DNA from: Dimorphilus gyrociliatus
Taxonomy: Eukaryota > Animalia > Annelida
Direction of reading: 5' to 3'
Assembly (NCBI GenBank): GCA_904063045.1
Contig: CAJFCJ010000192.1
Location: 1-39,399, forward strand
Length of the DNA: 39,399 bases
Every line of letters starts with the position of its first letter. Position 1 is the first letter of the stretch. Below, one piece after another: positions 2,851 through 30,550 of this stretch. The notes beneath the pieces are model-generated. The model did no database searches. It saw nothing but the letters and a program-made list of their open reading frames with translations, and had not been told where the DNA came from. The translations under genes were made by a program, and so were the position numbers.

Positions 2851-3950
2851 TTATAAAGGAAAATCTGGATCAACGTTATCTTTATAACTCTTAAATCCAC
2901 CTTCTATTACAAAACATTCATAACCTTTATTAGTTAATAAATTAGCAGCTGTAATAGCTGATATTCCTTTATTACATAAAACAGCAATTTTCTTATCCAT
3001 TTCTAATGTTATTGGTTCATTTTTAAGTATTTCTAGATGAATATTTATAGATTCATTGATAGAGATTATTTCATATTCTTTTTTATCTCTTATGTCTATT
3101 ATTATATACTTATCCTTATTTTTAATTAAAGAACACCAATCAATATATTGAGTATTATTGGGTTTAGAGTTATTCAAAGAACATCTAATACTTTCGACTT
3201 TAATAGGTAGCTTTTGGCATGCAATACAACTTTCTTGTTTATCTCTAATTTTAATATTTATAAATGAAGATCTTAATCCATCAAAAAGCAAGAGTTGAGG
3301 TTTATAATTACCTATTAAAAATTTTATTGCCTCAACTGCTTGTATACTTCCTATAAGACCACACATAGGACCAATTATGCCTGTTTGATCACAATTCATA
3401 GTTTTATTCTTAACTCTGGGTATAAACATCTATAACAGCCACTTTCCTTAGTAAAAACGTAAACATGCCCTTCCCACTTTTGAACAGAAGCACAAATAAA
3501 GTTAACATCGTAAAATCTACAGCTATCGTTTAACAAGTACCTTGTAATAATATTATCAGTACAATCAAGAACAAGATCATAATTTTTGATAATATCTATT
3601 GTTTTATGGGAAAACATATAATTTATTGCTCGTATTTCTATTTTAGAATTCATTGTTTTTAAAAGTGAAACTAAGCTTACAGCTTTACTTTCGCCTATAT
3701 TATTTTCATTGTAGCATATTTGTCTCTGCAAATTATGTTCTTCTACTAAATCATGATCTATTATATCTATTGAGCCAATTCCTGCCATTGTTAAATACAT
3801 AGAAACCGGTGCTCCTAAACCGCCAGCACCAACTATCAAAATTTTTGAGTTTAAAAGTTTTCTTTGGTTTAAACTTCCGAAATTGTCAATAATAATTTGA
3901 CGTGAATATTTTTTTATTTCTTGGTTATTTAAAATAGAATTAAAGTCCAT
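2851..3950 (-). CDS. UBA4: Uba4/MOCS3 (ThiF adenylyltransferase plus rhodanese), split by a 1-nt frameshift near 3400
   Basis: YSRQI, GAGGLG, DHDLVEEHNLQRQ, DCTDN and CYRCLYP in 3396..3950; NCDQTGIIG and a rhodanese domain (IIDIR, CNKG, GGFKSY) in 2851..3429. Confidence 0.9.
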
Positions 3951-16733: not shown

Positions 16734-17234
16734 TTATTTAAATTTAGGATGAACATTAAAACTAAGCACATCAGTCTTATATAATCCTATTAATGATCGT
16801 CCTACTTTTGTTGTTATTGAATTCTCTGCCGTATTAACCCAAATACTAATAGAAGCTCCAGTACTTCTAGGTGATAAAATACACCCACTTATGTGAAACC
16901 CATCAATACTTTCTGATACACAAAATTTTAATGTTTCATTCCATAAACTATTTAAATCGTTGAGTGCACTTCCTTTGACTTCGTATGTCCATTTAGATCC
17001 ATTGATATTATTCTTATCACTTACATCTGGTGATATTCCTTCTCTAAAGAAGTATAAATTTGAACTATGTGGCCAGCTGTTAGCTTGTCTACTGTTATCT
17101 ATCACAAAAAACAGTTCTTCGAGTGTTTCTACCTGACATATTTCATATATAGGTGTTCTTGATCTTCTATCTCCACTTTTATCACATTCGAAAGTGTAAC
17201 TCCAAGGTGTAGTAAGTGAATGTGTTTGATTCAT
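16734..17234 (-). CDS. Divergent eIF4E-family protein
   Basis: HSLTTPW, TLEEL, YFFREGISP..D..N..G.KW, ISGCILSPR and ISIW follow the eIF4E pattern. Confidence 0.85.
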   Translation of the reverse strand: MNQTHSLTTPWSYTFECDKSGDRRSRTPIYEICQVETLEELFFVIDNSRQANSWPHSSNLYFFREGISPDVSDKNNINGSKWTYEVKGSALNDLNSLWNETLKFCVSESIDGFHISGCILSPRSTGASISIWVNTAENSITTKVGRSLIGLYKTDVLSFNVHPKFK

Positions 17235-17589
17235 ATTTTGGGGTAAACAAATATTACTTAAAATAAATAAAACATAGGAATGAGCTGAAACTTATAATAA
17301 ACTTATTTATTTATTATTATTTACATTGTTTATTATGAAAGAATGTAAATGTTTTTTTAATTTTTTAATTTTTTTGATGTTTTAAATTTTTTATTTTTTT
17401 AAATTTTTTAAATTTTTGATATTTTTTAACTTTTTTAAATTTTTGATATTTTTTTGATGTTTTAAATTTTTTTAATTTTTTTAATTTTTTTAATTTTTTT
17501 ATTTTGATATTTTTTTAAATTTTTGATATTTTTTAACTTTTTTAAATTTTTTTTGACTTTTTTAATGTTTTTCTTAGAAACCCTTTAAA

Positions 17590-18519
17590 ATGGATTTTGA
17601 TTCTGAATCTGAAGAAATAAAAATCGTTTCAAGATCTAAAAACACTAAAAAGTCATCAATAAATAAAAAAATTGTTCCAGGTCGTACCTTAAGCTACCAA
17701 AAAGCTGAAATTATATTTAAAGAAGCTTTTAAAAGATCAGTTTGCTGTAATATCACTAATTTTAATGAAACAGTTACAATGATAGATAGCTTTTCCTATA
17801 AAAAAACAGAATGCCCTAGAAGATGTCCAGGCCACAAACAACTATCAACTTTCCTGAAGTGTTATAATCACATGTTTGACATAAAAATTATAAACAATCA
17901 AAGATATGTATTTAGAAAAGGAAAAGAAACTGATACTCTAATAAAAAATAGAAAACATTTCCATTTAGATGAATCTACAGGTGATAAGTTTATCCATCTA
18001 GAAGTGTTGATAAATAATCTATTTGCAGTAAAAACAACCATTCCTGAACTTGATTTACTAGAAATATTCTATTTGGTATACAAAGTAGAACTTAATGATT
18101 TTTATCCGTTTTCAAAAACAATACAGTCTAACTCAACACCTAATCTTCATGTTAGTATTAGACAGAATTATAATGTATTGACTTGTATTCCTACATCACA
18201 CAAAGATTATACAATCTCATGCTCAGCACATAGAAAGATCGTTTCATTAGAAGATACAGTAATTAAATCAATAAAGAAAGGAGTAGAAGAAATTAAATAT
18301 GAAAAGATTAACACTGATGTAAAATTACATACTAAAGATATTTTTGATGTGTTAAATGAAGATTTAGATAGACTTCTTGGATTATCAGATCTTAACATTC
18401 CAATGGTAGTACAAAATGGAATAAAATTGGATTCTAAACAAAAGGATGCTATTGAGACTTGTAATGTTGAAGTTTATAATTACATTAAATTAAACATTAA
18501 GTTAATGAAAGATAAATAA
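17590..18519 (+). CDS. Hypothetical protein with Cys/His cluster
   Basis: 309-aa ORF with CCC motif; CPRRCPGH...CYNH; family not recognised. Confidence 0.75.
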   Translation: MDFDSESEEIKIVSRSKNTKKSSINKKIVPGRTLSYQKAEIIFKEAFKRSVCCNITNFNETVTMIDSFSYKKTECPRRCPGHKQLSTFLKCYNHMFDIKIINNQRYVFRKGKETDTLIKNRKHFHLDESTGDKFIHLEVLINNLFAVKTTIPELDLLEIFYLVYKVELNDFYPFSKTIQSNSTPNLHVSIRQNYNVLTCIPTSHKDYTISCSAHRKIVSLEDTVIKSIKKGVEEIKYEKINTDVKLHTKDIFDVLNEDLDRLLGLSDLNIPMVVQNGIKLDSKQKDAIETCNVEVYNYIKLNIKLMKDK

Positions 18520-18691
18520 AAATATGAAAAAAATAAATTTTTAAAAAAAAATAAATTTTCAATTTTAATAAAAAATAAAATTTTAATAGAAAGAAATAAA
18601 TTTTTGGAATTTTAATAAAAAAAATAAATTTTAAAATTTTAATAAAAAATAAATAAATTTTCAATTTTAATAGAAAAATAAATTTTAGTTT

Positions 18692-19186
18692 TTATAGGAA
18701 GTCATCACTACTATCTCCATCAGGTTTTCTGAAATGATCAGGTCTAGGATCTTTAACCTTTCTCTCTTCTCCAGGAACCATAGGATCAAACCTAGCAAGT
18801 GGTGGAACCTCCTTTTTCTTTGATTTTGGTTTAAACTTTCTTTTAAACATAGGATCGTTTTCTCCAATTACCATAGAAGATGGTTTATAAGAATCATCAC
18901 TGAAATCATCTAATGGTGTTTTAATAGGATTTATGTTTGGAAATAAGTCAACGTTGGGATTTGTAACATTGTTTGTACTTTTAATAGTACTACCATCTAC
19001 ATTATTATTCAAATTATAGTCTGTAAAATAATTTTTTATAAAATTTAAGTCAATTTCAATTTTATTTGAAACTGCTAATTTTTTATTTCCATTTTTTATT
19101 AAAAATCGTTCTTTTTCTTCAAATACTTCAAATTCTTTATCAATTGATTTTAGTTCGTTTTCTAATTTTTCTCTGTTATAAAACAT
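18692..19186 (-). CDS. PI31-like proteasome inhibitor (PSMF1/Fub1-like)
   Basis: C-terminal MVIGENDPMF, VPPLARFDPM, PRPDHF and DDFL match the PI31 proline-rich tail (VPPGARFDP, PDPDHL, DDMYL). Confidence 0.8.
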   Translation of the reverse strand: MFYNREKLENELKSIDKEFEVFEEKERFLIKNGNKKLAVSNKIEIDLNFIKNYFTDYNLNNNVDGSTIKSTNNVTNPNVDLFPNINPIKTPLDDFSDDSYKPSSMVIGENDPMFKRKFKPKSKKKEVPPLARFDPMVPGEERKVKDPRPDHFRKPDGDSSDDFL

Positions 19187-19332
19187 TGAGAGGGATTGTT
19201 TTTAAAACTAATTTAAAGTCTCCTTTTTTGTTTATTTTTTGAATTTTTAATAAATTCTCATTTTTTATTAAAATTTATGAAATTTATAAATAAAATTCTA
19301 TATTTAGAGTGCTTTTAATTAGTTTTGGAAAT

Positions 19333-20088
19333 TTAATCCTTTTTTATTGGAAATCCGTCTTTGTCAACATCAGATAAAACTTTCATGCCAACTTCTCCTA
19401 AAAATACTTCCAAGAAATATTCAACATCACATTTTTTCATTTTTGACTCATTTTCTATCTTTTTTAAAGCTCTTGACTTCGATCTTCCTCTTATTAATTT
19501 CTCTAAATCTACGATATTTAATTCAGAGTTTCTATTACCTAAAATACCAATGCTTTTTTTACATCCAAGTAATCTTTCTTCTCTGCCTTTGGTTTTAACA
19601 TTAAGCTTTTTAACTTTCTGTACAAGAGTTTCTTCTTGTTTGTTTGCTTCAAAAACTTCATCAATTTGAGGATTTCGAGTTCCATCGAACAGGTCTTCAA
19701 TGTTTTTTAATTTTTCATATTCTAAAAAGTAGGAATCTCCAGTTCTTCTAATTTTACTGTCATCTAAATACTTAATACTCATTTCATGACCATTAAATGG
19801 TCCTGTAATCTTGTCTTCTTTCTTTATATACCATAATGTTATGTTTTTATCTTCTTTTATTAAATCTTTAGCTTCTTCTTTTCTTGTAATCATAAATTCT
19901 GTTTTTATATTTTTTCGTTGTAATGAATTTTCTTTATAGGCTGTTTCCTCCTCTTCTGTAAAATCAGATAAAAAAATAGGTTTCAAAGGTAGTTTATTAA
20001 TTAAATGACAATTACTGTTAAAGTTATCAGGTATTTTGGCTTTCTCTAGTTTTAGAAGTTCTCTATATTTTTCTAATAACAAATCCAT
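19333..20088 (-). CDS. GYF-domain protein, GIGYF/Smy2-like
   Basis: WY.K....I.GPFN..EM...+R..D..F GYF-fold pattern; N-terminal KIP...PL.P+.L..FTEEE. Confidence 0.7.
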   Translation of the reverse strand: MDLLLEKYRELLKLEKAKIPDNFNSNCHLINKLPLKPIFLSDFTEEEETAYKENSLQRKNIKTEFMITRKEEAKDLIKEDKNITLWYIKKEDKITGPFNGHEMSIKYLDDSKIRRTGDSYFLEYEKLKNIEDLFDGTRNPQIDEVFEANKQEETLVQKVKKLNVKTKGREERLLGCKKSIGILGNRNSELNIVDLEKLIRGRSKSRALKKIENESKMKKCDVEYFLEVFLGEVGMKVLSDVDKDGFPIKKD

Positions 20089-28999: not shown

Positions 29000-30550
29000 T
29001 TACCATCTTCTGTTGTACTGACTTTTAAATCTCTTGTTGTCAGAGAATCCTCTTCTTGGTATCAATTTAATTAATTCTTCAGGTACTCTTTGATTTGCTT
29101 GTCTTAAAATTCCTACCAATTCTTTAGCAGAGTATTTGTTCTCTGAGGTAACAAAAGAATAAGCAATTCCTTTCTTTGTATCTCCTCTGGCAGTTCTTCC
29201 TATTCTATGAATGTAACTTTCACAGTTTGTTGGGAAATCAAAGTTTACAACTGCTACGACATCTTTAACATCTAAACCTCTCGCTGCTACATCAGTTGCT
29301 ACTAAAATATTGCTAATTCCTCTTTTAAAATTGCTTATTACTCTATCTCTTACATTCTGTGCTTTGTCTCCATGGATAGCAGCTGCTCTGTATTTGTCTA
29401 TTCCTAATTCTTTTTCTAATTCGTCACAATTTCTTTTCGTGTTACAAAATAGAATTACTTTCTCATTTCCTAATGTTTTAAGAGTTTCAATTAGTTCAGT
29501 GTATTTGTCTCTCTCTTCTACTACCTTTACTATCTGTTCTATCTTATGATTACTTGTTAAGTCTTCAGATCCAATTCTTATCTGAATAGGTTCTTTCATA
29601 AAACTTTGGGCTAGACTTCTGACCTCCTTAGGCCAAGTTGCAGACCACATTAAAGTTTGTCTTTTTGGATTAGTATTAGGTATTATCTTTCTTAATTGTG
29701 GCTCAAATCCCATATCAAGCATTCTATCAGCTTCGTCTAATACTAAAAATGTTACTCTTGAAAGAGAAAAGATTCCTTGGTTATATAAATCTATAAGTCT
29801 ACCAGGAGTTGCTACTAAAACTTCTACTCCATTTCTTAAATCTCTTTTTTGTGGAAATGCACTTGTTCCTCCATAAATTGCAGTATTTCTCATACCATAT
29901 ATATTAGCATAGTCATCAACTACTTCTTTTATTTGAAGACAAAGTTCACGTGTTGGTGCTAGAATTAAAATTATAGGTCCATCATCACCTTTTATTGGTG
30001 TTTGTCTGCTTGCATGTATAAGTGCAGGTAAAACAAAGGATAGAGTTTTACCAGATCCAGTTTGTGCGATACCAACCATGTCTTTTCCTGTAAGTGCCAT
30101 TGTCCAGCCTTGTGCTTGTATAGGAGTAGGTTTATCGTATTTAGCTCTTCTGAATTGATCTTCGACTCCTCTTCCAAAATTAATATCCTCAAAGTTGAGA
30201 ACTGGTGGTTTTATAGAATCTCCTTCTATTTTCATACTATTTTCATCTCTATAAGCTTGAGCTTGTTTTTCTGGTATTTCATTTCTTATTAAATCATTAT
30301 AAAAATCTTTTTCAAAGTCAACCTCTCTGGTTTTCATTGGTTCTCCTTTTCCACTCCATGAATTGTTTCTAGAGAATGAATTTGTGTTATTTTGATTGTT
30401 TCTAGACCAAGTACCGGTATTAGTTCTATTTCTTGACCAACCACCTCCAAAGCTTGTGCTACTGCTTTTTGATTGGTTGTTTTTTGTGTTTCTTGTCCAT
30501 TTGGATGAATTATCATCTGTGTTGTCCCAACTGCTTTTATAATTTGTCAT
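29000..30550 (-). CDS. DBP2: DEAD-box RNA helicase Dbp2/p68
   Basis: PTPIQAQGW, AQTGSGKT, PTREL, DEADRMLDMGFEPQ, SAT, HRIGRTAR. Confidence 0.95.
   Translation of the reverse strand: MTNYKSSWDNTDDNSSKWTRNTKNNQSKSSSTSFGGGWSRNRTNTGTWSRNNQNNTNSFSRNNSWSGKGEPMKTREVDFEKDFYNDLIRNEIPEKQAQAYRDENSMKIEGDSIKPPVLNFEDINFGRGVEDQFRRAKYDKPTPIQAQGWTMALTGKDMVGIAQTGSGKTLSFVLPALIHASRQTPIKGDDGPIILILAPTRELCLQIKEVVDDYANIYGMRNTAIYGGTSAFPQKRDLRNGVEVLVATPGRLIDLYNQGIFSLSRVTFLVLDEADRMLDMGFEPQLRKIIPNTNPKRQTLMWSATWPKEVRSLAQSFMKEPIQIRIGSEDLTSNHKIEQIVKVVEERDKYTELIETLKTLGNEKVILFCNTKRNCDELEKELGIDKYRAAAIHGDKAQNVRDRVISNFKRGISNILVATDVAARGLDVKDVVAVVNFDFPTNCESYIHRIGRTARGDTKKGIAYSFVTSENKYSAKELVGILRQANQRVPEELIKLIPRRGFSDNKRFKSQYNRRW

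Follow-up and report, generated by a model that had tools for sequence, protein, structure and literature searches.

A putative miniature GIGYF relative linked to a class I-type eIF4E gene in microsporidia

The stretch of DNA considered here (hereafter the window) is contig CAJFCJ010000192.1 of the Dimorphilus gyrociliatus assembly GCA_904063045.1, 39,399 nucleotides in full length. It is very AT-rich, with about 23% G+C, and its source is a microsporidian parasite without a close sequenced relative. Between positions 16734 and 20088 it carries a GIGYF-like gene of 251 codons (19333..20088, minus strand), a PI31-like gene of 164 codons (18692..19186, minus strand; Pfam PI31_Prot_C at 3.9e-5, under the curated cut-off), an orphan open reading frame (ORF) of 309 codons (17590..18519, plus strand) and a gene for an eIF4E of 166 residues (16734..17234, minus strand). 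We suggest that the first of these genes encodes a strongly reduced relative of GIGYF, which retains the stretch that binds eIF4E-family proteins, and that its eIF4E neighbour is a descendant of the microsporidian class I eIF4E rather than a 4EHP.

The ORF at 19333-20088 begins as the original prediction quoted it. Word-indexed protein searches were blank for this GYF-like protein and for the eIF4E because of their limited sensitivity; exhaustive phmmer gave 34 matches, about 26 of which are true members of one family (best E 4e-17). P0148 and P0149 were tried as members and rejected as WD40 repeat proteins, four of the 34 matches in all being judged non-family. Long matches in several stretches (e.g. 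P0124) were excluded, since their similarity is confined to a short, repeated part of the query. Protein-language-model features lead to GYF clusters (score 0.85), and the ten best matches all belong to one family. The members are 218-525 residues long and include Astathelohania contejeani TCON_1269, Spraguea lophii SLOPH_1758, Nucleospora cyclopteri NUSPORA_02272 and Binucleata daphniae BDAP_002318, and every named member is annotated as a hypothetical protein. The literature searched yielded nothing relevant joining GIGYF or the GYF domain to microsporidia, and the family seems to be undescribed so far.

As judged from profile-to-PDB alignments, the binding elements described for GIGYF (PMC5538437) and an AlphaFold2 model, residues 1-57 of the window protein (19918..20088, minus strand) are homologous to the 4EHP-binding region of GIGYF. 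When the profile of 25 family N-termini, including that of the window protein, is compared with the whole PDB (177,635 sequences), the top two matches are 5nvl_B (GIGYF2, E 0.0046) and 5nvk_B (GIGYF1, E 0.09). Both are 4EHP-binding peptides, and the match is collinear. This comparison had been named beforehand as decisive. Its positive outcome bears out the likeness of the protein start to GIGYF2 that the original prediction had drawn, the GIGYF2 sequence given there being accurate.

The N-terminal elements in the window protein are a helix remnant (residues 2-14), Pro20, the hydrophobic pair L29-I30, P37-I-F-L, F43-T-E-E-E and Y51; AlphaFold2 places helices at residues 2-14 and 45-76. Pro20 (codon 20029..20031, minus strand) is the only invariant N-terminal residue of the family, being present in 25 of 25 sequences, and it is aligned to Pro59 of GIGYF2, the invariant linker proline that packs on Phe97 of 4EHP (PMC5538437). 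With gapless anchoring on FTEEE, P37-I-F-L falls on PLAL, F43-T-E-E-E on F84-T-E-E-E and Y51 on F92. Many relatives run on with (L/I)NS, akin to the VNS linker of GIGYF. The canonical YxYx4L-hydrophobic motif, whose tyrosine had been predicted to be missing, is indeed absent from the window protein, which has Leu3 at the position of Tyr43 and Arg9 at that of Leu49, while Tyr8 is out of register. In the Tyr43 column, Tyr or Phe occurs in only about 5 of the 25 sequences. In human GIGYF the auxiliary sequences offset dorsal and lateral mutations in vitro (PMC5538437).

A second GIGYF module is found in most relatives between the N-terminal region and the GYF domain. It reads W-x11-F-D-x-x-G-x-F, with 6 strict matches and loose ones in most other members, and its spacing is identical to that in human and fly GIGYF, where the motif that binds Me31B/DDX6 comprises W288/F300/F306 and W349/F361/F367, respectively, with Gly at F+4 (PMC6771390). 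The motif is missing from the window protein. A short subfamily (P0131, P0135 and P0143; 218-238 residues; loci L007 and L011) also has no DDX6-binding motif and does not end in DVDKDGF.

The third module is the GYF fold. The profile of 18 full-length members has GYF domains as its best PDB matches (GIGYF2, 7rup, E 2e-6; GIGYF1, 7ruq, E 4e-6). The family alignment was used to model the window protein with AlphaFold2 (mean predicted local distance difference test score, pLDDT, 83), and in this model residues 83-136 (19681..19842, minus strand) are matched by Foldseek to the GYF structures of GIGYF2, GIGYF1 and Smy2 with probability 0.97-0.99 (7rup_A 0.99). VIA gives Z 5.5 for 7ruq_C, with a root-mean-square deviation of 2.1 over 54 residues, and Z 5.4 for 3fma_A, the deviations ranging over 2.1-2.5. 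Judging from the model, residues 83-136 are a Smy2-type GYF fold, closest to that of GIGYF1/2.

The signature of this fold is degenerate. In its full form, GPF-x4-[MVI]-x2-W-x3-GYF, it makes the pocket for proline-rich ligands (PMC12249416). The window protein keeps G96-P-F-x4-M103 and the Phe plug F121. However, Lys106 stands at the position of the signature Trp and the GYF tripeptide is gone, in agreement with the predicted loss of the W..GYF segment, and the domain has an extra 4-residue deletion. The family as a whole has lost the Trp and the Tyr-Phe, its consensus being G-E-L in place of G-Y-F. Since the signature aromatics are lost, the pocket is probably non-functional. The C-terminal residues 167-248 (19345..19590, minus strand) form a family-specific helical domain of about 80 residues ending in DVDKDGF, predicted with pLDDT 94-97. 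No other part of the family is as well conserved; searches of the domain model with Foldseek and VIA gave generic helical matches only (Z <=5.5). The N-terminal and GYF profiles indicate that the product of 19333-20088 (minus strand) is a real, strongly reduced GIGYF relative in a microsporidia-wide, unannotated family.

The neighbouring gene at 16734..17234 encodes a protein of the eIF4E family, with a match to Pfam PF01652 at 5.7e-25 (88 bits vs a cut-off of 28.7) and to PDB eIF4Es down to 2e-15. Its residues were assigned from alignments to yeast eIF4E and to four syntenic orthologues that lie beside members of the GIGYF-like family, and human numbering is used below. The position of the dorsal Trp (human W73, yeast W75) is occupied by Phe42 (codon 17109..17111, minus strand), so that the dorsal Trp is missing as predicted. 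The class marker W43 is kept as Trp11, and the lateral-pocket residues F47 and I63 are retained as F15 and I32. In the cap-binding site, R157, which contacts phosphate, and W166, which contacts the cap methyl group, are kept as Arg123 and Trp132. However, of the cap sandwich, W56 has no aromatic counterpart and W102 is replaced with Val71, the guanine-binding E103 with Ser72 (Val71-Ser72 codons, 17019..17024, minus strand), and the phosphate contact K162 with Ser128. The C-terminus is about 15-25 residues short of that of the orthologues. E103 and W166 are otherwise invariant across eukaryotes in a 2024 survey (PMC11791286), and the changes at W102, E103 and K162 are found in none of the four syntenic orthologues aligned and in none of the published microsporidian sequences (Fig. 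S17, PMC11791286). With these cap-contact residues lost, binding of the cap (m7G) is unlikely, and the window eIF4E probably no longer binds m7G.

By its core GC(I/V)LSPR...IxxW and its gene neighbours, the window eIF4E falls among the published microsporidian sequences of class I (Fig. S17, PMC11791286) and not with the second paralogue, be it class II / 4EHP-like or F-class VI. In the PDB it scores 60 bits with yeast eIF4E vs 32 bits with 4EHP. Class II is defined by W43 replaced with Y, F or L and W56 with Y or F (PMC11791286), whereas the window eIF4E has W11 at W43 and no aromatic residue at W56. At the positions of Arg103, Glu149 and Arg138 of 4EHP it has Gln50, Asn99 and Glu. By these alignments the neighbour of the GIGYF-like gene is a class I-lineage eIF4E, not 4EHP.

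The loss of the dorsal Trp is not peculiar to this gene. Joshi et al. 2005 recorded the change of Trp73 to Leu in E. cuniculi (PMC1260017), and in the published alignment all microsporidian sequences of either class have Leu at the dorsal position, except for Mitosporidium, which keeps Trp (PMC11791286, Fig. S17). The original prediction took the missing Tyr, the altered GYF domain and the missing Trp for the marks of a pair eroded together in this genome. This is not supported: the dorsal Trp loss is clade-wide, about 20 of 25 family members are without the Tyr, and the W...GYF segment is lost family-wide. Any co-erosion would have to be extended to the clade as a whole.

The linkage of the two genes was counted over nine microsporidian loci with enough flanking sequence, the window included. 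In six of them (window, L005, L006, L008, L009 and L012) an eIF4E gene lies no more than 3.5 kb from the GIGYF-like gene. The distance is 2.1 kb in the window, where, as had been stated, the eIF4E lies two genes away on the same (minus) strand, with the PI31-like gene and the orphan ORF in between. In the five other linked loci the two genes are convergent, and in L008 and L009 they are directly adjacent. The gene order in L005 is prenyltransferase, GIGYF, PI31, eIF4E, kinesin; L012 has the same order with an unassigned gene of 251 residues at the place of PI31, and L006 (Astathelohania) reads PI31, x, GIGYF, eIF4E.

The kinesin, RPS4 and CAF1 genes of the conserved block were not found in the window. 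The trio GIGYF - PI31 - eIF4E is kept there despite differing flanks and thus stayed together through rearrangement, which is suggestive. However, the pair is embedded in a longer conserved run of genes, prenyltransferase - GIGYF - PI31 - eIF4E - kinesin, and the linkage can therefore be put down to ordinary synteny. Microsporidia are known for conserved gene order, and synteny by itself is no proof of functional pairing. The expected synteny across microsporidia is there, in six of nine loci, but as a piece of this larger block.

We consider it likely that the window encodes a miniature GIGYF descendant which keeps the 4E-binding stretch, is linked to an eIF4E gene by an ancestral block and is predicted to dock on a protein of the eIF4E family. 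The proposed scheme is as follows. The family would have kept the modules of GIGYF in their usual order, that is, the N-terminal region that binds eIF4E-family proteins, the DDX6-binding motif in most members, and the GYF fold. The first module would comprise the helix, the invariant linker Pro, the hydrophobic pair, the PLAL-like stretch, the acidic FTEEE helix, the aromatic residue and the LNS motif, and a new conserved C-terminal helical domain would have been added in the family. Of these, the window protein would retain the GYF scaffold, the C-terminal domain and, for 4E binding, the non-canonical and auxiliary stretch. We suggest that it docks on an eIF4E-family protein mainly by lateral and auxiliary contacts and not by the dorsal Tyr-Trp contact, and that it may act as a scaffold in mRNA repression or turnover. 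The eIF4E gene would have descended from the microsporidian class I eIF4E, and the two genes would be neighbours by way of the ancestral block GIGYF - PI31 - eIF4E.

Several observations weigh against this scheme. As a single query, the 251-residue protein has no significant match in Pfam or the PDB, and the case rests on family profiles. In human cells 4EHP binding requires the canonical motif (PMC5538437), which the window protein is missing. The lost ligand-binding residues of the GYF domain leave recruitment to mRNAs or ribosomes without explanation. In three of the nine loci, namely L010 (Binucleata) and the short-subfamily loci L007 and L011, no eIF4E gene is near the GIGYF-like gene. 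As regards the module originally proposed, the cap-sandwich residues are gone from the neighbour, so a cap-competing repressor complex with it is mechanistically doubtful. Of that minimal GIGYF-4E module, the reduced GIGYF relative and its linkage to an eIF4E gene stand, whereas the eIF4E turns out to be of class I type with its cap residues lost. The partner may be this neighbour or the genome's other eIF4E paralogue.

The strongest competing explanation is that the true partner is the other paralogue, of class II / 4EHP-like type or F-class VI, and that the adjacent class I-type gene is functionally unrelated. We regard this as quite possible, if somewhat short of probable. Microsporidia have two eIF4E paralogues (PMC11791286, Table S1), the second of which is class II / 4EHP-like in Nematocida and Vavraia and is called F-class VI in Encephalitozoon (PMC11791286). 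In the human complex Arg103 and Glu149 of 4EHP hold the backbone of PLAL, with the assistance of Arg138, Arg146 and Glu177, and give the complex its specificity (PMC5538437). Unlike class I, the Nematocida class II protein has Lys, Glu and Lys at the positions of Arg103, Glu149 and Arg138 (PMC11791286, Fig. S17), and orthology predicts a GIGYF-4EHP pairing. By orthology and contact residues a class II paralogue, wherever present, would be the more natural GIGYF partner. However, the class II proteins likewise have no dorsal Trp, and this explanation assumes a second paralogue in this genome as well as a GIGYF family member in Nematocida.

It is less easy to accept that the GIGYF-like protein co-evolved with the eIF4E next to it as a dedicated repressor pair, the loss of the Tyr being matched by that of the dorsal Trp; we consider this unlikely. 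Linkage of the two genes in six of nine divergent microsporidian loci speaks for such a pair, as does its persistence in the window, where the genes flanking the block differ from those of other loci. The lateral-pocket residues F15 and I32 are kept, the offsetting of dorsal-surface mutations by the human auxiliary sequences in vitro (PMC5538437) points the same way, and a partner without a dorsal Trp would be in keeping with the decay of the canonical motif throughout the family. However, the losses of Tyr and Trp are clade-wide, and the linkage is a piece of the larger syntenic block. The neighbour is of class I type, without equivalents of the Arg103 and Glu149 that hold PLAL, and it is without the cap-binding residues that a cap-competing repressor needs.

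A more speculative variant, to which we give little credence, is that the microsporidian GIGYF switched from 4EHP to the adjacent class I-type eIF4E, to which it would bind without the dorsal Tyr-Trp contact, and that in the lineage of the window this eIF4E gave up cap binding, so that a cap-independent decoy or scaffold of GIGYF and a pseudo-eIF4E would have arisen. If true, this partner switch would be a natural minimal repressor with a mechanism other than cap competition.

The eIF4E gene might instead be a decaying relic, an incipient pseudogene left from a duplicated class I eIF4E and without function. The loss of W56, W102, K162 and the otherwise invariant E103, together with the shortened C-terminus, would agree with this. 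However, the ORF of 166 codons is intact in DNA of about 23% G+C, where stops arise easily, which suggests selection; the residues of the core fold persist, Pfam still recognises the protein at 5.7e-25, and some of the stretch is found in RNA-derived contigs. We consider a relic very unlikely. Finally, that the N-terminus resembles GIGYF by chance or composition, in a generic Smy2-type GYF protein without any link to eIF4E, is highly improbable: the region is indeed short and Glu/Lys-rich and the single sequence has no significant match, but the peptides of GIGYF2 and GIGYF1 are exactly the top two among the PDB sequences and lie on the expected side of the GYF domain, and in most relatives the GIGYF-specific DDX6-binding motif lies between both modules.

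Among the remaining genes of the locus, the PI31-like gene, which has a proteasome inhibitor C-terminal motif, has been conserved near the GIGYF-like gene in each of three divergent microsporidia (window 18692-19186, minus strand; L005:11524-12150; L006:6562-7089). It adjoins the GIGYF-like gene in L005 and L006, and the window and L005 copies match in BLASTP at 7e-8. We know of no functional link of PI31 to GIGYF. The orphan ORF at 17590-18519 is negative in a Pfam search and has no similarity to the gene of 370 residues at the comparable place in L006 (Astathelohania). In other loci the gene for CAF1, a subunit of the CCR4-NOT deadenylase, lies 3-8 kb from the GIGYF-like gene (L007:17752-18534, L008:5311-6150, L009:15484-16269), as part of the conserved block that also holds RPS4, a kinesin and a ubiquitin-conjugating enzyme. 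The eIF4E of L008 (2929-3480, minus strand), a metagenomic contig, is called as ORFs of 32 and 147 residues that are jointly complete; the split is due either to a short intron or to a frameshift from sequencing.

Elsewhere in the window, the Rad3-like helicase reaches at most about 51% identity with any protein of the collection when a part of it is aligned and about 42% when aligned in full, and its best matches are nearly all microsporidian or metagenomic proteins. The search for orthologous loci by way of this helicase as a neighbour gave no shared synteny. A Uba4/MOCS3-like gene (ThiF and rhodanese; 2851-3950, minus strand) is split between the overlapping ORFs 3396-3950 and 2851-3429; as the ThiF profile runs on from the one to the other, a frameshift or a very short intron is indicated. 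DDX6 was considered for the DEAD-box gene at 29000-30550 (minus strand) and rejected; the gene is an orthologue of Dbp2/DDX5/DDX17 (PDB E 2e-133). Up to 51% of the sampled words from 16734-20088 are present in RNA-derived contigs of marine metatranscriptomes, and thus at least part of this stretch is transcribed. Sequence near-identical to it occurs in marine metatranscriptome and metagenome runs, plus runs of four organisms, and the host is therefore probably marine.

GIGYF-4EHP is a central translation repressor of animals, acting in microRNA silencing, AU-rich-element control and the feedback from ribosome collisions. To our knowledge, the essential GIGYF-4EHP core has so far been defined by truncation experiments only. 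Microsporidia seemingly ran this truncation naturally, down to 220-520 residues with an auxiliary 4E-binding stretch, usually a DDX6 motif, a ligand-blind GYF domain and a new domain. The family, listed as hypothetical in several microsporidian genomes, thereby gains an annotation. It may also serve as a compact system in which to ask which GIGYF contacts suffice for binding of the eIF4E type without the dorsal Trp and Tyr, and why a GIGYF-like gene stays beside an eIF4E gene becomes a testable question. The putatively cap-blind copy of eIF4E is unusual in itself, having lost the Glu103 reported as invariant across eukaryotes (PMC11791286).

Last but not least, both proteins can be compared with known systems. 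With the class I eIF4Es of microsporidia (E. cuniculi NP_597220, Vavraia XP_008074794) the window eIF4E shares GC(I/V)LSPR...IxxW, the loss of the dorsal Trp and the gene neighbourhood. However, it differs in having Phe rather than Leu at the dorsal position, in the replacement of W56, W102, E103 and K162 and in its truncated C-terminus. With 4EHP / eIF4E2 (class II), the known GIGYF partner, it has the eIF4E fold in common, but not the equivalents of Arg103 and Glu149. Yeast Smy2 and Syh1, the GIGYF homologues, resemble the GIGYF-like protein as GYF proteins of the fungal lineage, and its fold fits the GYF domain of Smy2 (3fma, Z 5.4); however, Smy2 keeps the GYF signature, which the microsporidian family has lost. 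We know of no 4EHP-binding region in Smy2 and Syh1. Unlike GIGYF, the family has no Glu/Gln-rich C-terminal regions and carries instead the helical domain of about 80 residues ending in DVDKDGF. The window protein itself is five times smaller (251 vs 1299 residues) and has no canonical motif, no DDX6 motif and no ligand-binding Trp and GYF in its GYF domain. Nevertheless, the linker Pro, the PLAL-like stretch, the FTEEE helix and (V/L)NS are recognisable in the family when it is set beside GIGYF1/2, and human GIGYF1 and GIGYF2 and Drosophila GIGYF have the same order of a 4E-binding region, W-x11-FDx4F (in most members of the family) and a Smy2-type GYF domain.

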